This document shows, piece by piece, positions 11,201 to 62,689 of a DNA stretch of 64,000 nucleotides. Under the pieces are notes generated by a model. It was not told the origin of the DNA. It ran no database searches and worked only from the letters and a program-made list of their open reading frames with translations. Position 1 is the first letter of the stretch; every line of letters starts with the position of its first letter. Position numbers and translations under genes: made by a program. Source of the DNA: Octopus sinensis (lineage: Eukaryota); NCBI RefSeq assembly GCF_006345805.1, contig NC_043010.1:35464001-35528000 (forward strand), read 5' to 3'.

Positions 11201-14200
11201 TTCTCATTCTATTGAACCATAAGAGAAACCACATAAGCAATTTCTATAGTATTTGCTCTACAGAATCATAGTTTCCAAAGTTCTATTTTGAACCAACAAT
11301 TCATTAGAATTTTATTCTTTCTCTTTTGTTTATCTTTAACTGTAATCATCAACATTGGATAGCTCTTTAACACTGTCTCATTACTTGTTACATTCCAGCA
11401 TCCCAAGATCAAACCTTATTATTTACTTTTTCATGGGCTTCTTGATATTTCACTTATCCTTATCTTTTATATATACCCAAATCTCATCTTTCACCCAATG
11501 ATAGCTAAAGTAGTTTACCACAAATTACTCAAACTTTTGGGAAAATAATTTTTGTTTCAGTGATCTGGAGTGCAGTTTTATAAAAAAAAAAATATCTGAT
11601 GACATTAATAGTAGTATTTGAGTTATTATTTTTTTGACTCTAATAAAGTTGAACCTGAAAAGATTTGAACTTAGAATAGTAGAGTAACAAACTTTCATGA
11701 ATGCTGTAAAGTGTGTAAAGTACTATTAACTGTACCATAACAATGCATGTATTTAAGATTTTAAAAATTATTAATCAAAAGAAGATAATGCTTATGTAAA
11801 TTGTGTTTATGACAAAAATACATATTTAAAAACAAAAATTAGAAAGGTAAAATATGGGTATAAACCAAGTGTTTGTCTTTAAAACTTCAAAAAATAATTT
11901 ACACAATGTAATTGTTAACTCTCAGTAAAACTCATTTATTAAAAAAAAATTAAATTGGATAAGTGAATGAAAGTGTGTTGATAAATGATTTGAAGGTAAT
12001 GAGTTCCGATCTGACTTTTGAAGTTCATAATCTTTAAGACAATGAATATTAGTTATAACTAAAATAACCTATTGCACTATAAAGATCTCACTGAAATAAT
12101 CAAGTATTGTTTCTGATTTGTGCCAATATTCATAAGTAGTTTACTCAAGAGCTTAAAAATCTAGCACAGTAGCTGCAGACCACTACTACAAAGCAAGCCT
12201 GTATGCATTAGTGCTTAACTGAAAGAAAATAGCCAACAGTTTCCACTTCATGGTTGTCAGCTTAGTTATTGTAGCAAAAGTAAAAATGAAATTTTATAAA
12301 AATATGTTTTAAATGTAGGACTCCTCCACTCAAGCATGAATAAATAATGTACATGATTCTTACTTTAACTTATATTTTTAATATATGTACAATTATATTT
12401 TAAAATTTGGCTTTTTTTTTTTTTTTTAACTATTTTAAGCTCATTATTCCATATTAGTATGGATTTGATCATTCTGTAAATTCAAGTTTCAGAACGTGAT
12501 TTACTGGAAAAGCCTTTGTATATTTTCTCCAGGTGGTTGGCTGTCTCTCTAAACTGTAAAGTTACACTTTTTCTTAACTAATGGTTGCTCAAGTAATTGC
12601 TTAAGCAAACCTATGATCAAAAGTATTCTAGCCATTACTACCCAAAGTTTTTTTTTTTCAAGCAGTATGCATTCAGGACTACATTAATTTATTTGAAACT
12701 ACACAATCTAATATGATCTTTTTTCTCACAAATTAGGAAATCTTTTTGGGACAGTTAGCAGACGGAATATACAATATAATATCCATAAAGTTTAAACACA
12801 ATCCATCATAGCCCCTGGTTGGTCTGCTGGATCAGTGCAAACTTGATCACTCCTTGATTAACAAGTCTTTCAGTCAAAGGCTGATAATATGTCAACAGCA
12901 AAATTTGAATACTTTATATTCCCATTAATTATATTTTCATTTCCCAGGAGCTGTCATGCAACTCAAGACTGATCCTAACGATGAATAGATTTACACATAT
13001 TGGTGAACATATGTTCTCTATGTGCATTTACACCGGGTTAAAAGTATATATAAGCATGCATGTAAACATCTATAGACACACGTTTATATTTGCCAATGTA
13101 ACTATGTAATTGTAATAATTATTCTACTGAAAAAATATGTATATATGCTATAAGGATTTAATGGATATGTATTGTTACTTTTCTATTTTTATTGCTATTA
13201 TTGTTTCTGCAAATTGGCTTAGCCTTCTCTTCATCATAAACAATACCAAACAGAAACTGATCTGAGTAAACATCCAGTTATGTGTAATTATGGTATGTAG
13301 AATATATATCATAATCATTTTTGTGCTTGATCTTTCATACTCATAAGGGTCGGATGGAAGTGTTTCATATAGTGTTTTGTTTTAAAAAAATATACGTGTA
13401 AAACTTGTGAAGCTTATAAAATTTACGTTTATTTTGCTGATCATGTGTTCAGACAAGTTTCAGCAAGAAATATATACTAAATAGCAACAAATATTCAACC
13501 AATGAGGAAGCTTGTATGTAGTTGCTCAACCTGCTAGAATAGACAACTCACTATAAAATCACATGCAACTAGCTTAAAATAAAAAAGTTATTTAAAGACA
13601 AGAAAGGCATGTTGGAAAATGTAGTAGGAGATAACTGTTTGAAAAGAGTTATAACTGGAATGTTCTTGATCATAGGTCTGCTGAATCAGAGATGATTTAA
13701 GCTAAGTAACAGATATGTGTAACCATAAAAAAAATGAAATAAGAACAGTAAAAGATAAATAATGACTCATAACTACAGGGAGAAATGAAAGGGGGAGTTG
13801 TGATGATTATTCTTTTTCCAAGAGCATAAATAACTAAAATAAAAAGATTCCAATTGAGAAGTAAAATCAGAGAAAAATTAATAAATTTAGACATAATAGA
13901 AATTTTTTTATATATTTTCAAATTACATTATAATGAATTATGTTAGACATTGTGTCTAATACCTGTAAAAGTCCCTTCTCAAACCGCTGAACCAAATGGG
14001 GAGTCTGATTTCTCAATATGCTAGAAATAGCTAAATTTCCTTCAAATTACATCCAACCATGCAGCATTTTAAACTAAACTATAATTATACAACTTCATCC
14101 AGTTATTGTTAATCCTAGGAAAAACAGAGACAACTGGACATTTAACTCACTAGCATACTCAAAACAACAATTTTATAGTTTTTATTTTGTTAGTTGAGTA

Positions 14201-15582: not shown

Positions 15583-16115
15583 TAAATTTATAAGGTACTC
15601 AACAAATTTTAATCTGGGTCTAAAAGAATGGGTGTATAATCCTCAGTGAAAATGATATATAGATAAAAACATTTCACAGAAGAAAAGCCAAGTCCTTCTG
15701 CAGGGTTATTGTGCTTTCGATCTTAAACAGTGAAACAGATACAAACCGTGTTCCTAGCATTTTATTTTTGAAATTATACCCTGCAATAGTTACTGTCAAT
15801 TTTATTACCTGGTATAAAATTAATTCCTCCCACTCACAAAAACAATAAAAGTAAAAAGGATCCAATTTGAAAGTATATGCAATGAGATATATTACTGGTA
15901 TTAAATGACAATCAAGAGTGCAGAAAAAAAATAAGCATGCGACAGTGTTAAAAAGTAGATAAGTAAATGAAGAGAAGTTAAATGTTGAAGTGTAAATGAA
16001 CCAGTGGTCACTCCAACAGAATAAAGCAAGCAACACATAATACGAGACAGGTTTCCTGTTTTAATGACTGAAACCTATAATGCGGTTAATAGTTGTAAAG
16101 GTATAACATACTCAC

Positions 16116-16364
16116 CAAAGTCAGTGCCGTGGCATGTGAGTCAATATCAGCAGTCAGAGGAGGCTTGTCGCCTACCTGGAAGTCAAAGTAGACAACCTTG
16201 TGGGAGAATGTGGAGAACTCATTACTAAAGCAGAATTTATACACGCCAGTTTGGTCAGCTGTCCACGTGAAGGTATCATACTGTTTCTTAGTGTCTTTGT
16301 ATAATATCTGACCACTTGGTGCTGAAAGTTCCATATCAACATCATAACTACCACCAGTTATTAC
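16116..16364 (-). CDS. TMED7: p24-gamma cargo receptor (TMED7/TMED3-like), coding exon 2 (83 codons, GOLD domain)
   Basis: [18 protein letters not shown]...[28 protein letters not shown]...ATALTL, bounded by acceptor ttgcag and donor gtgagt, both phase 0. Matches the [10 protein letters not shown](S/T)HK..YFDFQVG signature of TMED7/TMED3; assignment between the two paralogues is not resolved. Confidence 0.95.
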
Positions 16365-18439
16365 CTGCAACAAAAACAAAACACTATATATTTTCTGATT
16401 ATAAATAATAAACACCCAGTTTTAAAGCCGTTAATGTCAATAATTAGTCTGGAGAAGCAGAGAAGTGGCCCTGATTTTTCCAAGTTCTTTGAAACTGCAG
16501 CATAGGGATAGTTGAATGTGATTATTACAGTTAATATTCACGTTAATACTCTTGATGTATATTAAGAAAATTATGGAAAGAGGCAACAGAATCAAGCAGT
16601 GTTTATAATGTAGCAATTTGGTTAGAAGACAACATAGAATAGTCAATGTATGTATCAAATGGTTTTGAGATGGAAGTGGTATATTGTTAGCAAGACCTAG
16701 ATAGTAGTGGAAAAGATATAGTGATGAACATAATTCATGGATGGGCAAGAAAAGATACTGTTATTGATGGTTTACACAAGAAAAGATTGGATATGGCTAG
16801 CCACCAGATTGAGAGAAATGGTCAGAATTTCATGTCACATCATTTACCGGATTCTCAAACTTTCACTTTGAAAATACATTCTCACTTTTTTTTTTTTTAA
16901 ATTAGAATGACTGAAATCTAATTATTTATTATTTTCAAGATAGTTCTGGGGTGAGACAATAATAGCTATGAACTAGTGCACCCTTCTCATACTTTTATCC
17001 CTCATAACCTTGGATAAAGCTGGCTCCTGAAAGTTTGTAGTTTTGCAAACTGTATGGCAGCTTCATTAGTACTGGTGACACAAAAAAGGCACCTAGTTAC
17101 ACACTGTAAAGTGGTTGGCATTACAAAAGCAACCAGCCACAGTAATCATGGCAGACACTGTCAATCTCTCAAACACATGCCAGCATAGAACATGGACATT
17201 AAATGACAATGGAGGATGATGACCTAGTCATCTCATCACAAAGTTGTTTTTTTTTTTCTTACATATGGAAACTACCACTTGCATAAGTCATTAAAATTAA
17301 TACTAGTATATTCAATGTTATTTCAGCCAGGTTTGAAAAGGATACTAAATTATGCTAAATATTCTCGATTTCTTTAATTCAGTTTTAGTGTGTCAAGAAA
17401 ATCTGCAGGACAGTTATGCAGCCAGACTACAAACTGCATAGTTATAAGTTCAAAACTCACTTTTTTTGTTATATTGTATCTATTAAACAAACAGATTCCA
17501 TTTGACTGGTTAGCAAAAGGGCATCTTGTAGTAAAAGTAATTGCTCTACCAAATAAACCATCTCACATAACAATTATGAAGGAAGTGAGCCAATGGATTA
17601 AGATTTCCTGGAGTGGAGAGCATTTCAGTGTTAGATAAGTCTTAAAAGAACCAGCTAATTGTAACTTTGCTAGCCCCATAATGGTTCATATGATACTGAT
17701 TGTCTCCAAGCAAAATATGAGGGACTTTCTAACACAAATCTACACAAAGGCTGGTGATTACTCGATATGAAAAATAAAAAGAAGTGTTAGAACATGATTA
17801 TAGAAACCTTAAGCACTTCATAAGGTTCCTCAGAAGAGTATATTTGAATAAATTAACCCACACTACTTGATTGGTATATATTTTATTAACCCTAAAAAGA
17901 TGAAAACAAAGTAGACTACAGTGGAATTTGAACTTGATGTTAAAAAAAAAGAGATGTAACTTAATGCCAAATTGCTTAACTGCAATTAAAAAAGTTTACA
18001 ATATATGTTAAAATGTTCATGAAACTTAAACTCTAATAATCAAAGTTATAAGTGTGTGTGTGTTACAACACGGATAAGGTTTGATAACAAGAAGAATCTC
18101 GAGCTGCAAAATCCTGCCTCAAATAAGCACTTGCCCAACACATGCTAGCATGGATATTAAATGAATAAGTGTGTGGGTGGGTGTGTATAATTCAGCTAAC
18201 TGTAGAAATTTAAGTCTGCTTAACAAAAATTACAAACGAGTGCTCCTTAACCATAAGAATGATTTCTAACATTGGCACAAACCCAAAAAATTTAAGGGAG
18301 AAATGACTGTGACTGATCCGATTCCAGCACATGCCCGGTTTTTATTTTCGTCAACTTCAATTGAATAGAAGGCAAAGTCAACGCCTTAAGAATGTGAATT
18401 CTGATAGTGAGAGATAGGATAAAATTCTCAAACTCCAAG

Positions 18440-21625: not shown

Positions 21626-22882
21626 TTGGGTTGTCCGGAAAGTTCGTGCCGATTTTTAAAGGAAAGAAAAAGGTCAATAAATACTTGCCATTATATTTTT
21701 AATCAACCAAATATGAACCATTTTTGTGGCACAATGCGTCTCCATCTTTCCTTTAACTTGAAAATACCCTCTTCCCAGAACTGAGGTGGTTTCATGGCAA
21801 GGAATTCATCAAGGTATCTTTTTAAGTCATCCAAGGAAGTGAAATTTTTACCATTAAAACTATTCTGCAGAGACCTAAATAAGTGGAAATCCGAAGGAGC
21901 AATATATGGTGAATATGGAGGGTGGGGTAACACATCCCAGCTGAGCTGCAGCAATTTTTGTTTGGTTCCCAAAGAAATGTGTGGTCTTGCATTATCATGT
22001 TGGAAAACAACACCCTTCCTGTTGGCCAATCCTGGACGTTTCTCTTGAGTTGCTGCTTTTAACTTGTCCAGTTGTGTGCAGTATTTCTCAGAATTAATTG
22101 TCTGGTTACTTGGGAGAAGCTCATAGTACAGAATTCCTTTCCAATCCCACAAGACACAAAGCAAGACTTTTTTAGGGTGAAGACCCGCTTTTGAGGTGGC
22201 TAAGGGTGGGTCATGTCACTTATTCCAGGATTGCTTTCTCTGAACATTTCAGTAGATAATCCATTTCTCATCACCTGTCACAATTCGCTTTAAAAAAAGG
22301 CATGTTTTCATTCCATTTATAAAGCAAATTACAGATGGAAATGCGATCCAAAAGGTTCTTCTCACTTAACTCACGTGGTACCCAAACATTGTAGTGATTT
22401 GTGTACCCAAGCTTTACCAGGTGCTCATGAACGACAGATTTTGATAGGTTGAGGCTTTCTGCCAATTCTCAGGTTGTGCACTGTGGGTTATTCTCAATTA
22501 ATGACTTGATTTGGTCATCATCTGTAGTGGCTGGTCTGCCTGATCGCTCTTTATCAATAAGGCTACAATCTCCAGCTTGGAACCTTGCAAACTACTTCGG
22601 ATAAAGAAACATCACCGTAAACTGCGCATATTTCTTTGGTTGCTTGTGAGGCATTCTTCCCTTTACAGAAAAAGAAAAGCATCAAGTGCCGAAAATTAAC
22701 TTTCTTATCTTCCATTTTAAAGGGTTGCAGAATTAACACAGGTTATAGGAACATAAACCTTCTTCCACAAAAAGATAGCTTAAACTGTGCTCTAAATGGA
22801 GGTGTAGTCAAATCCTATTATATAGACTCAACCATGTTCTAAAATAAGTTGAAAGGTAAGCTACTATAAATCGGCACAAACT
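21626..22882 (-). mobile_element. Near full-length mariner (DD34D) transposon, frameshifted transposase pseudogene at about 21703-22715
   Basis: TA then TIR ttgggttgtccggaaagttcgtgccgattt at 21626; partial partner aaatcggcacaaact ending at about 22882; transposase motifs MEDKKVNFRHLMLFFF, WVPREL, IVTGDEKW, HDNARPH and YSPYIAPSDFHLF. Confidence 0.95.
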
Positions 22883-36512: not shown

Positions 36513-36827
36513 TTAAACCGAGTCTAGTACAGGTGGCTCATAACCCTCTGGTCTGGAAACCTTCTCTCCAGTTTCTGTGCCAGATGCACCAGTCGTGCTC
36601 TTGCCTTCACCATGCAGCTCCATCAATTTACCAAGATCAAATTTGGGTTTCTTCAATACTTTCACCTTCCTGATGAAGACATCGTGGAGAGGGTAGATAC
36701 CTTGACAAGCCTTTTCAATATCCTTGCCAATACTATCAGGGATGAGTTTGTTGACCACTTCTTTCATGTCATTAGCAGTGACCTCCCGGGTGATGATCTC
36801 AACCATCTTTTTCCTGATTAGTTTTAC
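36513..36827 (-). CDS. RPS3A: 40S ribosomal protein S3a (eS1), exon 2 (104 codons plus stop)
   Basis: Acceptor ttgcattttatag, then [16 protein letters not shown]...[47 protein letters not shown]...PPVLDSV*; with exon 1 it gives 264 aa. Confidence 0.98.
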
Positions 36828-37486
36828 CTATAAAATGCAATAAAATGTAAATATATAACATACACGCAACACAAGAAAATATGCACACAATAAAAATGAC
36901 AGGATACAGGATCACAAGCTCCTTGCATCTTGCTGCCAGTATACTAAGTAGCTAAACTCTCAAACAACCTCTGTGAATTGGGATGGATACAGTTCATTTG
37001 AATGCAGGAGACCAATAACAACAAACATTTTGCTTCACATGGTTTACTTTCTAAAACATTCATGTTTATTATTGGCCTGCAATGGATGATATGATTGTTG
37101 TATTGTCACTATTCCCAGTAAATAGGAATACTGGATTGTTTAATTACTTTTGTGGTCCTGAAGCAAATATTTGGTATAGTATGCTATCCACACCAAATAT
37201 TCAGTGGATACAAGGGAATAACCTAACTACAATAGCCCTAGTTTTTTTTTTTATACAAAATTTCCAGAAATCTTTGTTCTACAAGAAGTTACTATAACAA
37301 TGACAAGATATCTATTGTTTGCTATCCAGCCTCAAAACTAATCATTATTTTAATTAAGTCATATCACCTTGGTGTTGATGGGATTTCTTCCTGAAACAAC
37401 CTTGCCAGAACTTCTGTATTTGTAATTAGCAAAGACACAAAAGAATCTCGAGGCTCCAGTCACTAACTGATGCATGGTCAAGAGCA

Positions 37487-38280
37487 TCATCATCATCATC
37501 GTCGTTTAACGTCCGTTCTCCATGCTAGCATGGGTTGGACGGTTCGACTGGGGTTCTGGGAAGCCAGAAGGCTTCACCAGGCTCCAGTCTAATTTGGCAA
37601 TGTTTCTACAGCTGGATGCCCTTCCTAACGCCAACCACTCCGTGAGTGTAGTGGTGCTTTTTACGTGCCACCTCACAGGTGCCAGGCGGGGCTGGCAACG
37701 GCCACGGTAGATTGGTGTATTTTATTGCCCCGGCACGGAAGCCAGTCGAGGCGGTGCTGGCATCGGCCACGAGTCGGATAGTGCTTTTTACGTACCACCA
37801 GACCAGATCCTGGCTGGTTCAATTCGATTTCGATTTCGCTTGCCCCAACATGTCTTCACAACAAAGGGGTTTGGCAAGGGTGCCTGTCGTACGGTCGCAT
37901 TGGAGTATTTACGTGCCACGGCCACGAGTCGGATAGTGCTTTTTACGTACCACCAGACCAGGGATCCTGGCTGGTTCAATTCGATTTCGATTTCGCTTGC
38001 CCCAACATGTCTTCACAAGCAAGGGGGTTGGCATGGGTGCCTGTCGTACGGTCGCATTGGAGTATTTACGTGCCACACGGCCCCAGTCGGATAGTGCTTT
38101 TTACGTACCACCAGGCCAGGGATCCTGGCTGGTTCAATTCGGTTTCGATTTCGCTTGCCCCAACATTTCTTCGCAAGCATGGGGGGTTGGGATGGGTGTC
38201 TTGTCGTCGGATGAGGTTCTATATTGACTTCGCTTGCCTCAACCGGTCTTTGTGTCCAAGGGAGGAAAGGCATTCATAAG
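37487..38280 (-). mobile_element. Young RTE 3'-UTR insertion with a triplicated unit of about 155 bp, in the RPS3A intron
   Basis: (CAT)n tail at 37487-37500, family motifs, CpGs intact; units begin near 37768, 37921 and 38078. Confidence 0.8.
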
Positions 38281-40031
38281 ATGAATATAAATTTGTTGTG
38301 TTGCCATACCACCCAGCCCAGCTGTAAACCAGTAGTGGTGAAATATGCACAAACTTACATAATCACTTCAATCCTTTCTCAGTTCTAGGATTGAAAGCAT
38401 CTCAACGTTGACCAACCAACTTGTCTTTTTACAGACAGTAAATTACACAAACAGCCTCTTTCTTCGCTTTTTGTGCAAGTATGAGTGAAATGAAAGGATG
38501 GTTGACAACAGAGAATCAGTGCAACGCCAGCAATTATGTGCCACAGGGGACTTGTATCTCTTACAAATTGACGATTAAGTTCTTTCTTATTTAAAAAAAA
38601 CACATGTACAATAGAGTAACATAAATTTGGGGTAAAGTAGTCGAATGCGAACGTAAACAACGACTTTCTGTACGAAACAGAAGGGACCACACGAAGCGAC
38701 ATCGAAAGCTAAAACAGAAAATTAAATTGAGGATTTTCGAAATTCAAGCTGTAAGAAACTAATTTTTGGAAATTTTTAGCGAGAATATTTTCGAGGTCAT
38801 CTACAACCTCCTCCCCCATGAAATCAACAATCTGAATGTATTTGGTCAGAAAACAATTAGAATACCTAGCAAAAAGTCATCCATAAATTATATTCTGATA
38901 TTATAAAAAGAAAAAGCCTAACTTTGTAACATTCATTAAATACTCGTCGTAACTATACACTTAGCTTCAACCGACTCATTAACTACAACAAAACGCAGGC
39001 AATTCGGTAAAAATGGGATTAGGATTAGAAGTCTTTATATCCATTCTTAATTTTTATTTGATCGATTGTAGACGATAGAGAAAGGAAAAATAAATTTCAA
39101 CTTTAGAATAATATGGATTAACAAAAATTGGGCCTCACGTCTTCCACATTCCCTTAGTATATTTTTACCCGTATGAAAATGCTGTTACACTATCAGCTGC
39201 TTTACAGTGTCCTGCATACATGCATCTAAAATTTATTTTCGATAATCACAAATATTAAAGAATATAATAAAAATACAAGTACACACACGTGTTTCGTCCA
39301 CAGTCGAAGTTATTTTTGTTCGATGGATGGCTCCGCACTATGTGAGGGTAATCGTAAGAATACTTCAATATGCGTTGAAAGATTACTTTTTATTTTAGCA
39401 ATTTTTATTGCATTAACATGATTGTTACTTAAACATTAACCAAACGAACTAATTCTACCGCATAGAAACGGTAATAAAATCAGAAAAATACATCAACACC
39501 AGAAGCCGGCCGGTTGTCCTGTAATTTAAACACGCTATGTAAAATTCTTTCGGTAATCTATTCATTACAATCTAAATAAGAAAATCCGATTTCCAATAAT
39601 TATTTTCAAAAACACTATTTAGCAATGGAAATTCCATTTCCTAGGTCCTTCTTTCACATATGAACGAATTTTGAAAATCTCCTACCACACTGATAATGTA
39701 AATGTAACAGAAACAGCATGTCAATCTTAATTAGTCAGTGTAAAGTTTTGTCGATAATCCAAAGGTTTAAAAGAAAATCTTTTACAGGCGGAAGTATTGC
39801 ACCGAACAATTAATATTCCCAATGATTTTGTAAAAAACAAAAAAATGCTTTTCATACATAAATCGTCGCCTCGTAGCGCTGACATTTGTTGAAGATTTAC
39901 CCCTCAGATAGATACCTAATGTTAAGCAACAACGATATTAGACTGCATAAATTACAATAATTATAATAAAAACATGGATTTAAGTGCAACAATTATCATC
40001 ATAATCGCAGGGGAAAAAATAACAAACTTAC

Positions 40032-40511
40032 TTGAGCATGTTGAGCATAACATGTCTTCTTGTTTTGGTTGGGCTTCTTTTTGGTGAAACCGATACAGAA
40101 CATTCTCAACAGATATCCATCAGTGGTTCGTACATCGACATGTGCCTGAATCAGAGTCTGCCATTTCTTCACCATGGAACACAATTTATCTCTGGTCAGG
40201 TCCATGCCGTGGAAATTGGTAAGAACGTTTTTGCCTTGAACTTCTTCGGCGATCAGCTTCATCTTGCGGAAGGCAATTTCGTCATTTTGAAGATCTGCTA
40301 GAGATACTTCAAACACGCGGCCTTTCAGACCTTCGGAGGCAATTTTAGTACCTTGTGTTCTAGTTACTAAAGTTTTGCCGACTTGCCTAATGTTAAACAT
40401 ACTAGGGGCTTTGACATCATACCAATCTTTTTTCGTGAAAGGGTCTACTGGTTTCTTTTTTTGGCCCTTTTTTCCACCTTTTGTAAGCCTCTTATTTTTA
40501 CCAACCGCCAT
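40032..40511 (-). CDS. RPS3A: 40S ribosomal protein S3a (eS1), exon 1 (160 codons)
   Basis: [16 protein letters not shown]...[14 protein letters not shown]...TCYAQHAQ, then donor gtaagt at 40031 (phase 0). Confidence 0.98.
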
Positions 40512-43089: not shown

Positions 43090-45430
43090 GGGTAGCAGGG
43101 AACTGTATCAGATAGCCAGAAGGGAAGCTAGAAGACAGGTATTCAAGTTAATGGAGAAGCAGAAAAGGAGTTTGCCTATGTTCAGCCATGTGAAGACCAA
43201 AGACTTGAAGATTTTCGGATTGCAAGACAGTCTATGTGAGAAAATTGTGATGTCATAGAAGAGAAATATGTCTGCATGGATGGTGGCACTCTTGCATGTA
43301 ATGATTCTGCAAAGAAAGAAGCTTGGAAATGTCATTATGAAAAACTGCTGAACATGGAGGAGAGTCTGTGAAATGTTGACCCAATTGGGAGACCAGCTAT
43401 CTGAATTGACAGTATCTTGGTAGATAAAGCAATTAAGAATATGAAGACAGGGAAAGTTCCCAGCCCATCAGGAATCACCACTGAGATGCTTAAAATATCT
43501 AGTGGTGTGGGTTATGGTCTAGTCACCTGTATTGTAAATCAGGTGGTTCATGAAGGAATCATACCCAATGATTGGGGTAGCAGTACCATAGTCAATTGCT
43601 ACAAATGTAAAAGTGATACCTTAGATAGGAATAATTACAGAGGTATCAAATTATTGGATCAGATGATGAAAGTTATGGAGAGGGTCAGAACCCAACTAAT
43701 TGGGGAGAAAGCCTAGATGAGATGTAGTTTGGTTATGTGCCAGGTAGAAGCACCACTGATGCTATATTTCTGGTAAGGCAGCTGCAAGAGAAATACATAG
43801 CCAAAGATAAACCTCTGTACTTGTCTTTTGTTGACTCAGAAAGCCTTTGACAGGGTCCCCTGATCCCTTATCTGGTGGTCAATGTGGAAACTAGGGATAG
43901 ACAAGTGGTTGGTGAGAGCTGTACTAGCCATGTACAGTAAGGTGAGGGTTAGCAACAACTACAGCAAAGAATTCAGGGTACAAGTAGGGGTTCACCAAGG
44001 ATTGGTCCTCAGCCCCCTCTTATTCATCATAATTCTCCAGGCAATAACAGAGGAATTTAAGACAGGTAGCCCCTAGGAGCTCCCCTATGTTGATGACCTT
44101 GTTCTTATAGCTGAATAACTAGAGAAGTTTCAGGTATGGAAGCAAGGTCTAGAATTGAAGGGCCTTTGAATTAACCTAGCAAAAACCAAAGTTTTAGTAA
44201 GTAGGAAGGCAGACAAATCACAAATCTCTTCAGGTAGATGACCCTGCTCGATCTGTAGAAAAGGCACAGGTAGAAACTCCATAAGATGTACCTGGTGTAA
44301 GCTATGGACACATAAGAAGTGCAGCAGTATCAGAGGAAGGTTAACAGGGAAAATAGCTTTTGTGTGTGGAAGATGCACAGGTACAATGAACACCAAAAAT
44401 GTACAGAAAACAGACTTCATCAACTGCCAGCAGGGTAAGCTAGAGGTAATAGATAGCTTCCATTATCAAGGTGACCAAGTTAGAAGCAGAAGTGAAAGCT
44501 CCAAGAGCATAGTTGTGAAAATAAGATTAGTCCAGGCAAAGTTCAGAGAGCTCCTACTTCTGCTGGCAACAATGGGCCTCTCCCTCAAAGTGAAAGGCAG
44601 ATTGTATGATGCTTGTGTGTGAACAACTATACTACACGACAGTGAAACATGATCTGTGACAGCCAAAGACATGTGTAGGCTTGCAAAAAAATAAAGCCAG
44701 TATGCTTCACTGGATGTGCAATGTCAGTGTACATGTTTGACAGATTGTAAATATCTTGAGAGAAAAGTTGGGCATAAGAGGCATCAGATGTGGTGCGCAA
44801 GAGAGACGACTACACAAGTGTTGCTATGTGGTGCATATTGATGGGGACAGCTATGTAAAGAAGTACCGATCTCTAACTGTGGAGGGAACATGTGGTAGAG
44901 GTACATGCAAGAAGACATGGGATGAGGTGGTGTAGCATGATCTTTGAACTTTGGGCCACACAGAGGAAATTACTAATGCCTGAGACCTTTGGCATTATTC
45001 TGTGCTTGAGCAGACCTGTCAAGCCAAGTAAAATCGTAGTTGTGGCTGATGTCAGTGTCATGTAACTGGCACCCATGCTGGGGGCACATAAAAAGCACTT
45101 TTTGCATGTTGGGCCTCTTGAAGCACAGCGGCTGATGCTGGTGGCATGTGAAAAGTTCCTTTTGATTGTTGGACCTCACAGAGGCAATGACCAAGACCTT
45201 TGGCATTATGTCGTGCTTGAAAAGAAGACCCATCAAGCCAAGTAAAATTGCAGTTGTGGCAGATACCAATGTCGTGTCAGTGGCATGTAAAAGCACCCAT
45301 TATACTCTTGGAGTGGTTGGTGTTAGGAAGGGCATCCTACTATAAAAACCATGCCAAATCAGACTGGAGTCTGGTGCAGCCTTCCAGCTTGCCTGGTCAA
45401 ACTGTCCAACCCATGTCAGCATGGACAATG
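43090..45430 (+). mobile_element. 5'-truncated RTE-clade LINE (RT remnant plus 3' UTR)
   Basis: MVDKAIKNMKTGKVPSPSGITTEMLK, NYRGIKLLDQMMKV, VGVHQGLVLSPLLFIIILQA and the YVDD-region remnant ccctatgttgatgacc; broken by stops and frameshifts. Confidence 0.92.
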
Positions 45431-47990: not shown

Positions 47991-48394
47991 TGTTCAAAAT
48001 TCACAACAGCTGTTTCAGCAACATTTTATTGATGCATTCTCAGATAACATCATGGCAAAACCCCTCCATCTTTAGGTAAATTTCAAATATATAAACAGGT
48101 AAGGTAGAAATAGAGGCAACTAGTTTCCAAAATTCACAACAGCTGTTTCACTGGCAGTTTATTGATACATTCTCAGATAACATCATGGCAAAAAAACCCC
48201 ACCATCTTTAGGTAAATTTCAAACATATAAACAGGTAAGGTAGAAATAGAGGCAACTAGTTTCCAAAATTCACAACAGCTGTTTCACTGGCATTTTATTG
48301 ATGCATTCTCAGATAACATCATGGCAAAACCCCATCGTCTTTAGGTAAATTTCAAACATATAAACAGGTAAGGCAGAAATAGAGGCAACTAGTT
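47991..48394. repeat. Tandem repeat, 3 copies of about 135 bp
   Basis: Unit caaaattcacaacagctgtttca...ttctcagataacatcatggcaaaa...tttaggtaaatttcaaa..ataaacaggtaagg.agaaatagaggcaactagtt. Confidence 0.95.
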
Positions 48395-50019
48395 CACCCA
48401 CAATCATGGCAGACATTTTCCATTATGATTGTTGGTTAACTGGTGTCAATGCAGAATGTGCTACATGTCCTTGACTGAACTAGAGAATACTACTGTCTCA
48501 GCAAGAGGTGACAGATCAGCATTTCCTTCCAAGTTGATCCAGTTTTAATATAAAATAAAGAAAAGAAAAAAGAAGATACACCCTCCGTCCCATATAACTT
48601 CTCTGTCAGAATGATATCTTAACTTAGTACAACTTTTATTATGTTTGGTGAGTTGTAATGACACATTTATATTGGCGCGGTTACAAAGTTCGCTACACAA
48701 CTACGTTGTTTCAGGTTTAATCCCATTACATAACATGACCACAGTAGTTAAATTTAGTAGGCAGAGAACATATTTGGAGCGGTAGACTAATCCGCCATTC
48801 GGTTTAACATGACTATCTAACACCTTAATGTATAAAGTATGTTGCCGATAGATATCAGACACTCCCACCTCTCAGCAGTGTCCACTCAGTTGCAAGAATT
48901 CGGTCAACTCTTCGGTATGAGGACAACTCGCACTTTCTAGTTTCGGAAGCTTTGAACATGGGCGCTGCACTTCCTCCTCTTGACTAAATAGTCTACACAA
49001 ATATATAAATTTGAAAAAAAAAAAAAAAGCTTCTTTGAAAAAGTTACGGTAATAATAAAAAAGAAAGTAAAAGAGAAAGGTCCTCCATTAAATCTCATAT
49101 CTGTCATAAATGTTATGTATAAAGTTTACAGAAACAAATAATCATGCCAACAATCTCACTTTTGTGAAATTTAACATACTTTTGCTGACGCAGACCGCTA
49201 AGTTTAGCCGGGCTGGAGATTTTCTTTCCTGTTATGTAATTGTAATTGAGAGAAATTGGTTTAGAATTTAATACCACTTTTTATTTAAAACTAAATTAAA
49301 TGTCATATTCAAAAAAATATACTTCATCTGCATCCAACTGACTTTAACTTAGAAAAGAGAGAAAAAAAGAAATAAAAACAATTTTTGGTTCATACGAATC
49401 ATTCTCAGAATCTTTCCTCAGTCAAGTTCACGCTTGCTTTACCCAAAATGCAACAGGCATCCGGCTGATTATAATATTTGTCCGAAAAAAAAAAATTGAT
49501 AAATATTAATTATTCACGAATATAATTATCATATTTTATTAATATTAATACTTTCAGTCGTAAAGGAGTATGGATTTAATTTAATTTAAGCGAATAAATA
49601 TACACTAATGTCTGTCCTATTTTTATTTACTTCCTACCCACTTATCGGTTCTACGGAAAAAAATATATAACTTAAAACAATCATTTTTATTTGAGATATA
49701 TTTAATCTACATTTATTACCATTAATAAAAAAAGAAACACTTTCAGAACTTCCGTTCCAGCTTCCATTTGTATATATATATATAAATATATATTTATAAA
49801 ATAATACATTTCAGTGACTAATCATTAAAAAGGATGTCTCCTCTTCCATTTCTTTTTATAACCTAATTAGACTATGTTGATATTTGTCGTCAAATCAGAG
49901 TGTATAGAAATATAATCCTTTGAAAAAACCCAGATTACTTATTACCTAAATTAACATTGTCATATGTTAGAATAGAAATTACGAGTGAAATAAGAGATAG
50001 AAAGAAGGGACGAAGAGGA

Positions 50020-50160
50020 GGTTAAACTCCGCAGTTGATCCTGTCTCCTCCCGTTTCTGCGCGTCTAGTTTTCTACTACCGTGCATGCGCTGTCCGTTTA
50101 TCTCGGAGCTCCATTATTGTTCTGCTGCTGTTGTAGCGAGCGAAGAGGACAGCTTGCTTG
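50020..50160 (+). promoter_or_regulatory. Probable promoter/TSS region of the C6orf62-like transcript
   Basis: CpG-rich patch with a pyrimidine-rich stretch and an NRF1-like tgcatgcgc at about 50082, upstream of and on the same strand as the ORF islands and C6orf62. TSS not determinable from sequence. Confidence 0.5.
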
Positions 50161-50311
50161 TTCTCTTTCTTTATTCTTTCAGACAAATATTTCATTGCTT
50201 CTGGTACTGATTTTGTCAGTCAGCAAATCTTCCACTGAGTCTCATGCAGAAACTTGCCGTAGCAGGAAATATGCTGTCGTGCCTTTCTCGGCACTGCCTC
50301 ATACTTCGACC

Positions 50312-51133
50312 ATGGATGTTGACGAAGGACCCAGCAACATATACATAACAGCCCTGTTGGCAGAGAGACCCACCAACTCTTTTTGTAATTATAATAATAA
50401 TTACTATTATAATCTTTGTTGTCAACGCCAACGCCCCTTGCCTCAACAACTTCATTACTGTTACTATTACAGCTACTGTTATTATTACTATTACCACTCT
50501 CGTCATCTTCGCCAACTCATTGGAATCTCTTCTACTGCGACCAACAACACCAATCTCATTGCCGCTGCCCTTGCTGCTGCTACCTCTATAACCACCATTT
50601 ATATAGCCTTATTTGCTGTTGTTGACAGTTTTCTATTTCTTCTGTTTTTATCAGCGCATCAAAACACCAATAGCACCAACATAGACAACAACAGCACAAA
50701 TACTGACATTAAGACCACCTCTATTACAAATAACAGAACCAACATAAACTCCAGTAGAAACACCATTAACAATAACACGAACATTACCACAGTTGTCTCC
50801 ACGACGAATAACAACAACAACAACAGAAAGTATTTAACTAATACTCAAAGCACTTTTCTCTCTTTACCCGTCTCCTCTCACTTCTACCTCGCCAGTAACA
50901 AGTACACGACCATCGACATAGACCAGGGTGACATCGACAACATTGTCGGCATCAACCTCAGCAGCAAAAGGAAACGACGTTCGAACAGAAGTGACGGCGC
51001 ACAACAGTCAACACAATGTCTCGGAAGTGATTGCGAATGGGACTGTCTCGATGAGAAAAGCTTGTTTGAAACGATCAATTTCCTATCATCCTACTACCCG
51101 TTCACATCATCATTTGTAGATTTAATCAAATAG
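50312..51133 (+). CDS. Candidate upstream ORF1, 273 aa, low-complexity protein of unknown function
   Basis: ATG in strong context (gaccATGG); frame open from 50081; internal repeats are triplet-based; no homologue recognised. Confidence 0.45.
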   Translation: MDVDEGPSNIYITALLAERPTNSFCNYNNNYYYNLCCQRQRPLPQQLHYCYYYSYCYYYYYHSRHLRQLIGISSTATNNTNLIAAALAAATSITTIYIALFAVVDSFLFLLFLSAHQNTNSTNIDNNSTNTDIKTTSITNNRTNINSSRNTINNNTNITTVVSTTNNNNNNRKYLTNTQSTFLSLPVSSHFYLASNKYTTIDIDQGDIDNIVGINLSSKRKRRSNRSDGAQQSTQCLGSDCEWDCLDEKSLFETINFLSSYYPFTSSFVDLIK

Positions 51134-51618
51134 AACTGATAGCCAGAGAGAGATAAGAGAGCAACAACGATATTATAACAGTAATGATGATAGTAGCAAA
51201 GCTGTATTAAGTAAATTATTCGCAACTATACATACAAAACAAACATACACATTATACATTTAATATGTAAACAATATTGTATATTTATTTTGTATACATA
51301 ACTCTTATAGCAACATGTATTTAGACATAAGTTAACAGTGAATTTTCAGATGGGAGGGAATAAGGTTCTATCTTAAAACTCAGTATTTAAGCTTTTTTTT
51401 GTTTTTTTTATATGCACTCATGGTTTCTCAGAGTCCCGAATTAGATTTATGTAATAATTATTTTTATTACAACACATCTATTTCTTAGCTAAGCCAAACA
51501 CTAGTTTGCTTGTTGACTGAAAACAAATTTTTTTCAATATGCTTGCAAGTTGAAAGTGAATTTTTTTTTTTTCTTTTGTTTTTGGTGTTACTATCTGCTG
51601 TAAAAATCATTTTTCAGC

Positions 51619-51888
51619 ATGAAGTCGCTAGCAACGGGTATGAACGGGGTAGTTTCTGCCACCATTTGTGATAAACCTTGTTGTTCTTTGCCTCTGTCGA
51701 TTCAACTGCCTCCTCCACCACACTCTGTCGCCTCTAATACCACCACCACTGTTCCTCCGTTAATAGCTTTCGCCGCTGCCACCATTCCCATTGCGTCCAT
51801 CAGTCTCAGTAATACAAGCCACATCAGCATGCCACCAGCGATAACAACCGCTGCTGTTGCCCCTTGTTTGCAGACCCTGTTGTTTTGA
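51619..51888 (+). CDS. Candidate upstream ORF2, 89 aa, Pro/Thr/Ala-rich
   Basis: ATG (agcATG) 1 nt after an acceptor-like tttttcag; ORF coincides with a GC-richer island between AT-rich spacers. Confidence 0.3.
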   Translation: MKSLATGMNGVVSATICDKPCCSLPLSIQLPPPPHSVASNTTTTVPPLIAFAAATIPIASISLSNTSHISMPPAITTAAVAPCLQTLLF

Positions 51889-52155
51889 TTAAGCATTTTA
51901 ACAACAAACCCTCCATAACATATACTGGGCACTTGCCATTCCCTCCCTTCCTTATTTTCTTTCTAAACCTCTATTTTCTCCTTTCTTTTATGGGGGTGTG
52001 TGTTATCATGTGAAATGAGTTATATAAATATGTATAAATAAATGAATGTAATTTATCTATATATATTTTAGTGTATATTGAACAGTTTTCTTCAGAATGA
52101 CATCATAAAAGGAATTGGGATTTGTGTTCGAAAAAAAAAAAAAATTGTAGGAAAA

Positions 52156-52335
52156 ATGACGAAGTCGCATTTTGAAGCAGACCTTTCGGTGGGTCTGTCT
52201 ATTTTGCGAAGAACTCATTATATTGTCCATGGGCTTGTTGATGATTTCGGTGTCCCATCTCCACCACCATCACATTCGTCAGTCCTAATAGCATCACTAA
52301 TTACTTCTCTTTTCTTTCCTTTAGAATCTTGTTGA
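52156..52335 (+). CDS. Candidate upstream ORF3, 59 aa
   Basis: aaaaATGA context; MTKSHFEADLSVGLSILRRTHYIVHGLVDDFGVPSPPP...; coincides with a GC-richer island. Confidence 0.3.
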   Translation: MTKSHFEADLSVGLSILRRTHYIVHGLVDDFGVPSPPPSHSSVLIASLITSLFFPLESC

Positions 52336-53831
52336 GTAAATATATATATATATATATATAATTTTTTTCATGATAGAGTGTACAATAGACGTGTACATGT
52401 ATAATAGAAATGTGTGAGCATGAAATAGTTGTGTGAATAGGTTGGAAGTTCATAAATGATTTGAAGTTTCTTTGGGAAAGATATATTTTTGAAAAGAAAG
52501 AAAAAAAGTGGGTTAAAGAAAAAAAAAATTAAAATGTATTTTTTGTTAATGTCATTTTATTAATATCATACTATTGTGAAAAAAAATCTACAAAAAAATG
52601 TATTAGTGATGCAAAATATAGATTTTGTTGTGTTCGTGAAGGTGAGAATTTTTTTTTAAACCTCACAAAAATCCAATTAAATATATATATATATATTTAA
52701 AAATGTAGATTTATAATATGAAAAAACCCCACAAATATTTGTATGTTAGTTTGTAAAAACTAAAAAAAAAAAAATATATATATAAATATAAATCTACACA
52801 ATCCCATATTCCCTTTTTCCATTCCTTTTCTCTGCTGAGAAAACCAGTATGTTTAAGTCTACATGTATATAATACTAAATGACTTGACTATTGGGCAAAA
52901 AGAGTTATATAAAATATATCTGCGGTATGGATATAATAAGGGCTGAAAATCTTGTTCTAAACTAAAACAGGTGACAACTATGGCAAATACTTAGGAAATA
53001 TTGAAAGAGAAAAGGGAGAAAAAAAAAAGCACCAGCACAGCTTTTTTTTCCTGAAAAATTTGGTTCAGACCAAAAAGTTTTCAATAATTACAAAAATAAA
53101 AAAATTCTTTAGGTTTTTAGATGCTTTGATGAAGGGACAGGAGTTAAAAGAAAAGAAGAAAACCCAGAATTAAAAATATACAAATCACTGATAGTGTTAA
53201 CATAGTTTGTCAAATAAGATGGAAGAATGAATAAAAGAAATTAAGATAATTTTTGAGGTGATATTGGGCACGAGAATTAAGTCTTCAATTGGTACAAGCA
53301 CGACTACAACAAGTCGATACTGTACAAGTTAAAAGTTTTTGTAGTCTTGGAGTGAAATTCCATTGGCTATATATGATTATCTTCTCCAAGTAAGGTTCTA
53401 TTTGAAACTACTTCCCAATATTTCATAGGTTTGCGAACTTTTTTTTTCAAAGATTGTTGTTGACTCCTGTAGTACAACAGTTTTAATTTTTTTCCTTGGT
53501 TCTCATTTTTTTTTGTTTTCAATTGTCAGCAAATTCAAGATATACTATTCCTTTTTTTAAGTTTTCATGAAGTAAATCCCCTACATAAAGAAAAGGAAAA
53601 CGAATTACTTTTAATGATTTTTTTTTCCACAGTGTGTATAAGTTAATCTACAGTTAATTTATTTGATCTCATTCTATTCCCATTCCTTTTGTCATCAACA
53701 GTTTGTTAATCATCTTAGGTGTCTATAGTTATAAGTTTTCAAGCTCATCTCTCCTTAGTGCTATAATAGGTTTCATCCTGTTGTTGAGGAATCATATAGT
53801 TTAAATAAAAAGAAAAGAGAAAACCTGTAGG

Positions 53832-53960
53832 ATGGGGGATTCCTATACACGCAAGCAGACGGCTGTGAACCGGCTGAGGCATCGACTGAGAAAGAAACGA
53901 GAATCTTTGGCAGATCATTTTGACTTCAAAATGTACATTATGTTCCATTTCAAAGACAAG
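53832..53960 (+). CDS. C6orf62: C6orf62 orthologue (uncharacterised conserved protein), coding exon 1 (43 codons)
   Basis: [43 protein letters not shown] matches the human N-terminus as I recall it ([43 protein letters not shown]); in-frame stop upstream at 53802; donor gtatgt at 53961. Confidence 0.92.
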
Positions 53961-60800: not shown

Positions 60801-62689
60801 GTCATATCTTCAGTTATATATTTTCTTTTTCTCACTTAATTGATAAATGGCTCTAAATGGTACTTGGCTTGAGGAAAGCTGTAAAAACCTCAGGATGTTC
60901 AAATGATTTGATGTGGCTCTTCTGTTGCTATGTGTATAAAATTTGTTTTTACTGACATACATTGACTTTGAGCTGATCTGATACCAAACAGAAAGTGGAA
61001 TATTTTGTGATATTTGTACTTCATGTATGTTCACAAACACTAATAAACTGATAACAAAATTCAGTTTCACTGTATCTAAGTTATTTTCAAGTTGGGTGTA
61101 ACTTAAGAACAGAACCAGTTGTTGACTGTTTGCAAATAATGAGATTAACCTGTAGCACAGGGTGTTAATATAAGAACAGCAGCTATACTGGCAGTAGTGG
61201 TGGTTGTTTAGGTCCAGGTCAGTTCTTATCATAAACACACTTATGATCAAATTTGTTCCAGCTGTGACCATTTTTATTCCAGATATAGTGTATTCATGAG
61301 TGTATTATTTATATATTTCCTATCTTTTAAAGATGATTGTGTTATATGAGTTAGGTTTGGCTATTATTTCAGGCAAGGTGATTGATCATATTAGAAATTT
61401 CATTGGTCTATGCTACTTTGGTGCATATGTGAAAGGATGGTGCATCCTTTGTTGAAAAAAAAAGTGCCTATATATTTTATGATAAAGTATACATTTAAGA
61501 CAAGGTAGTTTGCACTTCATTCTTATTAGAATGAAGAAAGGCTTGATTATTGAAAAGGTATCGTTTTGAGATGTATAAAAATATTTTTTTACTGACTTGC
61601 CTATATATTTCTACCAGTGAAATAGCAAAATGAACATGAGGAGACCTAGTTCTCCTTACATTTAGTACTTAATGTTATTCTTTATTGTTGGGTAATCTTT
61701 TATCAAAGATGTCTTAGCTTTTTCCAAACATAGTATAAACTGTTATTGTGTATGCTCTCCTTTAATGACAATATGGTGTGTTTGTGGGACATTTGTTTGC
61801 TATTTCTAACAACTTGAGTGGTTATGTAGTCACACTTCATTGGTTTGTCACAGTTAAGAAAGTAGTTGATTTATTTTGAGATTCATAGGCATGTATTGGG
61901 TCTCTTGCTAGTTAGACATTATATGCAAAGGTTGAATGAAGAAATGTGACAAAAGAGAGATTGGTGTAAAAGGCAAGCCACTTGAATGAGAGAATTCACT
62001 TTGTTTTATAATATTGTCCAGAGATTGACTACATTGAAATTCAGTGAAGCTTCAGCTTCTAATATGGTGAATTTGTACCTAAACTCCAACTTGAAATACA
62101 GGAATGTAATAGCTACCAAGCTATTATCATTGCTAAGGACTTCCTGTCTGTCTCCTGATGTCTGCCTGGTTACATTGCAACTATTATGAATTTCTCACAG
62201 TGGGTACTTTTACTGACCTCATGCCGGTGGCATGTAAAAAGCACCATCCGATTGTGGCTGTTGCCAGCCTCGTCTGGCCCCCGTGCCGGTGGCATGTAAA
62301 AAGCACCATCCGATCGTGGCCGTTTGCCAGCCTTGTCTGGCACCTGTGCAGGTGGCACGTAAAAAGCACCCACTACACTCACAGAGTGGTTGGCTTTAGG
62401 AAGGGCATCCAGCTGTAGAAACAGTCAGATCAGACTGGGCCTGGCACAGCCTTCTAACTTCCCAGACCCCAGTTAAACCATCCAACCCATGCTAGCATGG
62501 AAAACGGACGTTAAACGATGATGATGATGCTGTTTATGCTCCTTTGTGTATTTGTTTTCCTTATTATTATATTAGTATAAATATGTCATAATCTGATTTG
62601 ATACCTGTTGTTTGCCTTCTATTATATATATATATTCAAATATGAATGAGAAGCAGCCTGAGGGATATAAACAATATTGATCACACATA

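Follow-up and report, generated by a model that had tools for sequence, protein, structure and literature searches.

A probable octopod-restricted gene without annotation in three Octopus genomes, containing a segment that may be exon in Octopus and intron in Argonauta

Does the longest open reading frame (ORF) in a 64,000-nucleotide (nt) stretch of Octopus sinensis chromosome DNA, hereafter the window, encode a protein, and if so, which parts of it would be translated? The frame occupies positions 50312-51133 of the plus strand and lies between RPS3A, a divergent gene on the minus strand 9.8 kb away, and a DUF4566 gene on the same strand 2.7 kb downstream. A 24-kb locus reached through RPS3A is 100% identical to window positions 26513-50511, which puts the window at CM016872.1:35,464,001-35,528,000 (plus strand) of the O. 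sinensis assembly GCA_006345805.1. Our comparison across octopods suggests, with a probability that we put at roughly 0.7, that it is a protein-coding gene restricted to octopods, with a fast-evolving and disordered product. It is most likely an octopod gene that lacks annotation in three Octopus genomes and is already listed as a hypothetical protein in Argonauta. The one unusual point of the locus is a segment that is probably exonic in one genus and intronic in another. In the coordinates below, L001 denotes a contig of an octopodid sequenced as SRR11869391, L004 the Argonauta hians locus and L005 the O. bimaculoides locus.

A first, sequence-only reading of the window had pointed to an ATG in a strong Kozak context within a long frame open from 50081, and both are present. 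The frame extends over 350 codons from 50081 to a TAG stop at 51131-51133, with ACCATGG at 50309-50315, and translation from the ATG at 50312, the sole Met codon of the frame, would yield 273 amino acids (aa), including the peptide SLFETINFLSSYYPFTSSFVDLIK. Measured from stop to stop, it is the longest open frame of the window (354 codons versus 192 for the runner-up; the next ORF has 173 aa), and in 2000 shuffles of the region that preserved its dinucleotides, no open stretch exceeded 200 codons. That reading also held that the repeats inside the frame are exclusively triplets, and our counts bear this out: six trinucleotide runs of at least three units were found against 0.46 expected from the rest of the window, whereas homopolymers of at least 7 nt (1.39 expected) and dinucleotide runs (0.79 expected) were both absent; Tandem Repeats Finder was also run. 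The hydrophobic stretch, the basic cluster KRKRR and the motif CLGSDCEWDC (51017-51046) sit where it had placed them. Its proposal that an acceptor at 50182 could add upstream coding sequence did not hold. An acceptor-like TTTCAG does exist at 50177-50182, but the coding extension is refuted by a 1-nt indel in O. bimaculoides and by 2-nt and 1-nt indels together with an in-frame TGA in the SRR11869391 octopodid.

Searches placed the relatives of this frame within octopods. Pfam returned no family at E <= 1 for the 350-aa frame, and an exact-sequence look-up of the 273-aa product gave no record. A word-indexed search of 5.8 billion proteins recovered one relative, P0001, on a 2.3-kb Logan contig of SRR11869391. 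An exhaustive HMMER scan of 1.84 billion representatives gave two matches, both octopod, the second of which (P0122) is GAB1604272.1, a 181-aa two-exon 'hypothetical protein' (Ahia01_000708600) of Argonauta hians; no homologue outside these octopod sequences was found among the 1.84 billion representatives. The Argonauta gene also lies between RPS3A and DUF4566. The O. bimaculoides locus, which we reached through members of the RPS3A cluster, has a 274-aa open frame at the same site, and the SRR11869391 octopodid has a 284-aa frame from the conserved ATG under the standard code. The portion of the O. vulgaris locus that was compared differs from O. sinensis by one base. A frame is present at the syntenic site in five octopod genomes, namely O. 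sinensis, O. vulgaris, O. bimaculoides, the SRR11869391 octopodid and Argonauta hians; the species identities of the relatives' loci were taken from PMC12682272 and PMC13652810.

Viewed among taxonomically restricted ('orphan') genes, GAB1604272.1 resembles the O. sinensis frame in its position between RPS3A and DUF4566, its N- and C-terminal modules, its lack of any domain and its lack of outside homologues, and the two are about 40% identical over the C-terminal half. They differ in that the Octopus frame is continuous, 273 aa long, and carries a Tyr/Cys tract, a hydrophobic helix and KRKRR, whereas the Argonauta model has none of these three. In the window, positions 50385-50654 (the middle segment) are the counterpart of the Argonauta intron, and the parts of the frame on either side are referred to here as exons 1 and 2. 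A transposon or viral origin was rejected, the locus being single-copy and syntenic, with no other homologues. The 93 additional N-terminal residues of P0001 (377 aa; L001 1126-2259) were likewise discarded as a gene-caller artefact in which TGA was read as Trp; read with the standard code, the open frame of L001 begins just 99 nt upstream of the ATG. P0001 is a warning for eukaryotic contigs called by a prokaryote-style gene caller. A homology search for more syntenic loci with the 43-aa first exon of DUF4566 gave a single uninformative 48-aa match.

Insertions and deletions argue for a translated frame. About 22 of 22 indels inside it are multiples of three (3n), versus about 39% in the flanks. 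Between O. bimaculoides and O. sinensis, all four in-frame indels are 3n (6, 3, 3 and 3 nt). The comparison of the SRR11869391 octopodid with O. sinensis gives seven of seven in exon 2 (9, 9, 3, 3, 3, 15 and 3 nt), with a further 6, 6 and 12 nt in the middle segment, and Argonauta gives seven of seven in exons 1 and 2 (36 nt, composed of 3 + 33, then 54, 9, 12, 33, 3 and 3 nt). Outside the frame, 3n cases number 0 of 5 and 0 of 4 among leader indels; around the O. bimaculoides ORF the count is 1 of 7, upstream of the frame in the SRR11869391 octopodid 5 of 17, and downstream in Argonauta 23 of 50. The zone that is free of stops and admits only 3n indels starts at the conserved ATG and finishes at the conserved TAG, and the alignment decays within about 10 nt of the stop.

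Substitutions point in the same direction. The ratio of non-synonymous to synonymous differences (pN/pS) is 0.41-0.46 in protein-guided alignments, with a synonymous excess at P = 0.001-0.01, which shows mild purifying selection. Nucleotide-only alignments give 0.54-0.64, which is the lowest value among the plus-strand frames or close to it, the others ranging from 0.5 to 1.5. The chance that a neutral sequence would have remained stop-free over the Octopus-Argonauta distance is 0.026. Every disabling lesion in Argonauta lies within the middle segment, and exons 1 and 2 are free of them. Furthermore, the exon-2 frame of Argonauta contains no ATG and is therefore translatable only through the conserved exon 1 and the intron. 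The suggestion that selection has preserved the frame is thereby supported by the 3n-only indels, the retained start and stop and the synonymous excess.

Several observations nevertheless weigh against a coding gene. Codon-position periodicity is not significant, and exon 2 is no better conserved than its surroundings, with 3.4% nucleotide mismatch versus 2.7-4.8% in the flanks for O. bimaculoides and 62% identity versus 63% for Argonauta. Exons 1 and 2 have a pN/pS of 0.92 on the short branch that separates O. sinensis from O. bimaculoides, control frames reach 0.5-0.7, and the amino-acid constraint is weak. AlphaFold2 with a three-sequence alignment found no fold (predicted local distance difference test score, pLDDT, 35.9); its helices were weak and confined to the hydrophobic stretch and the tail. 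No gene is called at the site in the assemblies of O. sinensis, O. vulgaris or O. bimaculoides, and the pipeline behind the Argonauta model mixes ab initio, RNA-seq and homology evidence. Abundant triplet repeats by themselves favour 3n indels and open frames. Moreover, conservation alone proves little here, because the 4-kb interval is dense in conserved non-coding blocks and the neighbouring frame at 51619-51888 is also open. That frame has a pN/pS of about 0.8 and a nucleotide identity above that of the frame under study; it could represent a small gene, part of a 3' untranslated region (3'UTR), or a frame that is open by chance within a conserved non-coding block.

Taken to their end, these observations would describe a stretch with no protein product, either a by-product frame of G-poor, triplet-repeat-rich DNA in a conserved non-coding cluster or a non-coding transcript from the leader. 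Its openness would then come from 3n triplet slippage and from A/C-rich codons that seldom mutate to stops. The neutral probability of finding no stop is not vanishing, at 0.17-0.22 for the close pair and the value already given for Argonauta, and as many as 46% of the downstream non-coding indels are 3n. We consider such an origin unlikely. Even if each indel were granted a 70% prior of being 3n, about 22 of 22 would arise with a probability of about 4e-4 by our own arithmetic. The clean zone is bounded by the conserved ATG, in its Kozak context, on one side and by the conserved stop on the other, the Argonauta lesions are limited to the middle segment, the synonymous excess remains, and the ORF is far above any shuffle. 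A coding gene therefore remains our preferred reading of the frame.

If a protein is made, its constraint appears to be concentrated at the two ends. The conserved N-terminal part reads MD(V)VDEG..SNI..ITALLAER in an alignment that includes Argonauta; this module is identical in the four Octopus-clade sequences, and Argonauta differs only by in-frame 3- and 33-nt insertions. The C-terminal tail is the best conserved part of the protein, with WLxSDCxWDCLxEKSLF..NFLxSY..SSFVxLxK in all species. Its conservation had been named in the sequence-only reading as a check on the frame, and the tail is kept in every species compared. O. bimaculoides, the SRR11869391 octopodid and Argonauta have Trp in place of the first Cys of CLGSDCEWDC, so only two tail Cys residues are conserved. 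KRKRR is present in O. sinensis, O. bimaculoides and the SRR11869391 octopodid; in Argonauta the corresponding residues are SDDSQ and the tail is retained.

The order of these features had been read as the layout of a proprotein. In its fullest form, the frame would encode a type II membrane or secreted precursor whose Asn/Thr tract is N-glycosylated and which is cut by a furin-like enzyme after KRKRR, releasing the 50-aa Cys-containing tail as a signalling peptide. Some features suit this idea: the hydrophobic segment is strong throughout the Octopus clade (Kyte-Doolittle 19-residue mean 2.36), basic residues N-terminal to it suit an N-in/C-out topology, RKRR matches R-x-K/R-R in the three Octopus-clade species, and the peptide that would be released is the most conserved part of the protein. 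Secretory exposure of the motif, however, hinges on translation of the hydrophobic segment. That segment is degenerate and intronic in Argonauta, which also lacks KRKRR and still keeps the tail; because Argonauta lacks both, the conserved function cannot depend on either. Basic sites flanking the tail are not conserved, and the single basic cluster is the one replaced in Argonauta. No N-terminal signal peptide is apparent, judged without a dedicated predictor, the start (MDVDEGPSNIY) being acidic and the sole hydrophobic segment beginning at residue 82. The many N-x-S/T sequons that had been reported are present, ten in number, but a hand estimate from the Asn/Ser/Thr-rich composition predicts about eight, so that composition explains their number. 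With the first tail Cys also lost and no similarity to any known precursor family in the Pfam and HMMER scans, the precursor layout does not stand as a conserved design, and we regard such a membrane or secreted precursor as quite improbable. Since the hydrophobic segment changes in the manner of coding sequence within Octopus, a membrane-anchored form may exist in that genus, and one that is also cut by a convertase would be an elaboration of the Octopus clade.

Comparison with known systems leads to a similar picture. ITM2B/BRI2 is a type II membrane proprotein that is cut by furin near its C-terminus. The unspliced Octopus form would be laid out similarly, running from an N-terminus in the cytosol through a single internal anchor to a lumenal part, followed by a basic site and a short Cys-containing tail. 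The resemblance is one of layout only: the Octopus protein has no BRICHOS domain (none in Pfam at E <= 1) or other domain, and neither site nor anchor is kept in Argonauta. With neuropeptide and prohormone precursors it shares a small size, a basic motif of the kind used for cleavage and the conservation of a C-terminal peptide, but it lacks an N-terminal signal peptide, Gly amidation signals and repeated peptide copies and has a single basic cluster. KRKRR also fits the K-K/R-x-K/R consensus of a nuclear localisation signal (NLS) in Octopus, a match not conserved in Argonauta, and a nuclear low-complexity protein, which had been offered as the alternative to the precursor, fits the predicted spliced form described below equally well.

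The middle segment raises a separate question, namely whether it is exon or intron. In the Argonauta model (L004), exon 1 spans 10001-10109, a phase-1 intron spans 10110-10824 (715 nt) and exon 2 spans 10825-11261. The intron corresponds to window positions 50385-50654, and splice-like boundaries are kept in all species. The Argonauta intron carries in-frame stops, non-3n indels, a frameshift in its T-rich end and inserted repeats. The segment contains no stop in any of the three Octopus-clade species and is always 3n long (270 nt in O. sinensis, 276 in O. bimaculoides and 282 in the SRR11869391 octopodid). Removal of the segment by splicing would leave an in-frame 183-aa form with the junction peptide PTNSFSHQNTNSTNIDNNSTNTDIK, in which the Kyte-Doolittle maximum drops from 2.36 to 0.71.

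One explanation is that the gene is coding but that 50385-50654 is a constitutive intron in Octopus as it is in Argonauta, so that the true product is the 183-aa soluble protein. The Tyr/Cys tract and the membrane helix would then be a translated intron, and FLFLLFLS, which is the pyrimidine tract read as protein, would be the polypyrimidine tract. The donor T/GTAATTAT and the acceptor TTATCAG/C (slashes mark the splice boundaries), the branch-like TTGTTGACA and the pyrimidine tract are kept from Octopus to Argonauta while the rest is scrambled in Argonauta. The Argonauta model splices precisely there with the frame preserved, and the conserved protein modules all lie outside the segment. Yet any given frame of a random 270-nt piece would be free of stops with a probability of 0.012-0.025, to be multiplied by one third if a 3n length is also required, and the segment is open in three Octopus-clade species. 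Its indels within the clade are 3n in four of four cases, and its pN/pS values are 0.11 (five synonymous versus two non-synonymous differences, P = 0.007), 0.36 and 0.51, by which it is as constrained as the exons. The donor (TTT/GTAATT) is also weak, without G at -1 and +5. A constitutive intron in Octopus appears rather doubtful to us, and translation of the middle segment in Octopus is somewhat better favoured than its absence.

Translation and splicing need not exclude each other. Exitrons, as Marquez and colleagues are said to have described in 2015, are reportedly stop-free introns inside coding exons, often of 3n length, whose retained and spliced forms both yield proteins. In sequence, the Octopus segment is of this kind, being a GT..AG piece inside a coding exon that is stop-free and 270 nt long, a multiple of three, with coding-like substitutions. 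It differs in that the only splicing evidence here is the gene model of another genus. Whether some splicing of the segment also occurs in Octopus is, on these grounds, an evenly balanced matter. These observations are most simply reconciled if the segment is translated in Octopus, perhaps with optional splicing as an exitron, and became or remained a plain intron in Argonauta. In a more elaborate version, which we hold only tentatively and think rather less probable than its contrary, the same 270 nt would be used in two ways, coding for an anchor and Tyr/Cys tract in Octopus and serving as an intron in Argonauta, and optional splicing would toggle between an anchored, convertase-cleavable form and a soluble one. 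If true, a young gene would have been caught in the act of gaining or losing an intron ('intronization').

The Argonauta intron (L004 10110-10824) also contains short-repeat copies of the type ..CCCTTGTGGCTAA[A/T]TGAGAAATC.., which occur just upstream of the gene as well (9446-9600), and a tRNA-like stretch, AGCTCAATTGGTAGAGCGTCG. These suggest insertions of short interspersed elements (SINEs) or satellites into a former coding segment.

The most conserved element of the locus is the leader with the first 73 nt of the frame (50212-50384, about 170 nt), and not the protein body. The leader is about 96% identical in Argonauta versus 62% for the ORF body, and synonymous divergence of the frame is near 1. 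Despite an upstream ORF that overlaps the main ATG, this conservation is at the nucleotide level. Folding of the leader RNA showed no excess stability (z = -0.49), and Rfam gave nothing credible, either in the window at gathering thresholds or in 49900-52200 at E <= 1. A candidate promoter element in O. sinensis is an imperfect copy of the palindrome GCGCATGCGC, and the perfect palindrome occurs at the matching place in the SRR11869391 octopodid and in Argonauta (L004). The leader may thus be a promoter-proximal or translational control element. A 99-aa minus-strand frame at 50216-50515 lacks an ATG start and was treated as an antisense shadow of this leader.

Put together, the locus can be modelled as a gene set between RPS3A and DUF4566 that would have a conserved, promoter-proximal leader of its own, begin at its sole Met codon in a strong context and end at a conserved stop. 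If transcribed and translated, it would give a disordered, fast-evolving product in which constraint falls on a module of 24 residues at the N-terminus and on one of about 45 at the C-terminus; the Asn/Thr/Ser spacer joining them would grow and shrink through triplet slippage. In Octopus, reading through the 270-nt segment would add a Tyr/Cys tract and a 34-residue hydrophobic helix, and the resulting 273-aa form could be anchored in a membrane. This segment also carries the conserved splice-like signals described above (GT..AG, branch-like site, pyrimidine tract), and its splicing in Octopus would produce the in-frame 183-aa soluble form. The features on which this model draws, and those of its surroundings, are collected in Table 1.

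If real, the gene would add one unannotated, lineage-restricted gene to three reference octopus genomes. It would also be an example of how young low-complexity genes evolve, combining triplet slippage in the spacer, short conserved ends and a stretch that serves as exon in one genus and as intron in the other. For annotation, the locus advises caution, as a 'membrane helix' may coincide with a polypyrimidine tract and acceptor, an ambiguity exposed only by cross-species comparison. Its practical importance is modest, because no link to a known pathway or trait has been shown.

Table 1. Features of the locus and of the surrounding window (window coordinates; L-numbers as in the text).
Feature	Position	Strand	Remarks
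Candidate promoter element, GTGCATGCGC	50081-50090	+	One-mismatch copy of palindrome GCGCATGCGC (NRF1-type site); about 225 nt upstream of the ATG
Ultra-conserved leader	50212-50311 (100 nt)	+	100% identity with O. vulgaris, O. bimaculoides and L001; about 96% with Argonauta
Overlapping upstream ORF, 34 codons, MQKLAVAGNMLSCLSRHCLILRPWMLTKDPATYT	50244-50348 (ATG 50244, stop 50346-50348)	+	Overlaps the main ATG
Start ACCATGG and N-terminal module, MDVDEGPSNIYITALLAERPTNSF	50312-50384	+	Equals exon 1 of the Argonauta gene model
Middle segment (Tyr/Cys tract and hydrophobic stretch)	50385-50654 (270 nt)	+	Donor T/GTAATTAT, acceptor TTATCAG/C; TTGTTGACA and pyrimidine tract before AG
Tyr/Cys tract	50384-50497	+	Inside the middle segment
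Hydrophobic stretch	50555-50656 (residues 82-115, 34 residues)	+	Kyte-Doolittle 19-residue mean, maximum 2.36
Asn/Thr/Ser-rich low-complexity spacer	50655-50965	+	First part of the exon-2 equivalent; fastest-evolving part; length shifts by 3n indels only; pLDDT 25-35
KRKRR basic cluster	50966-50980	+	Fits furin consensus and monopartite NLS; Octopus clade only
C-terminal 50-aa tail, Q[C/W]LGSDCEWDCLDEKSLF..NFLSS..SSFVDLIK, and TAG stop	50981-51133	+	Motif and stop position kept in all species
Second frame, 89 aa, MKSLATGMNGVV...QTLLF	51619-51888	+	TTTCAG just before; same stop, open in O. bimaculoides and Argonauta (L004 from 11858)
First AATAAA past the stop, candidate poly(A) signal	52037-52042	+	Inside a block identical in Argonauta and O. 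bimaculoides
DUF4566 (PF15130) gene, first coding exon (43 aa)	53832-53960	+	Followed by GTATGT donor
RPS3A (eS1) gene	36513-40511 (exons 39999-40511 and 36513-36806)	-	First coding exon 160 aa, last exon 97 aa
EMP24/GOLD-type exon	16086-16415	-	Matches EMP24_GP25L gene adjoining RPS3A in O. bimaculoides (L005 21211-23135)
Mobile-element debris	21703-22164, 43417-43716, 47995-48394, 62222-62370	- (21703-22164), + (43417-43716)	Mariner-type transposase fragment (Pfam Transposase_1), reverse-transcriptase-like fragment, 136-nt tandem repeat, SINE-like repeats

Downstream of the frame, the interval from its stop to the start of DUF4566 (51134-53831) holds many blocks that are near-identical in Argonauta, for example at about 52030-52130, and forms a dense conserved non-coding cluster. 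The candidate poly(A) signal at 52037, if used, would imply a 3'UTR of about 0.9 kb. The first exon of DUF4566 is 95% identical to the Argonauta exon; its later exons were not located within the window. SINE-like repeats are scattered across the whole window. On the other side, the RPS3A protein of the window is 100% identical to O. vulgaris and O. sinensis RPS3A, and an intron of its gene holds a 157-nt tandem repeat (37764-38207).

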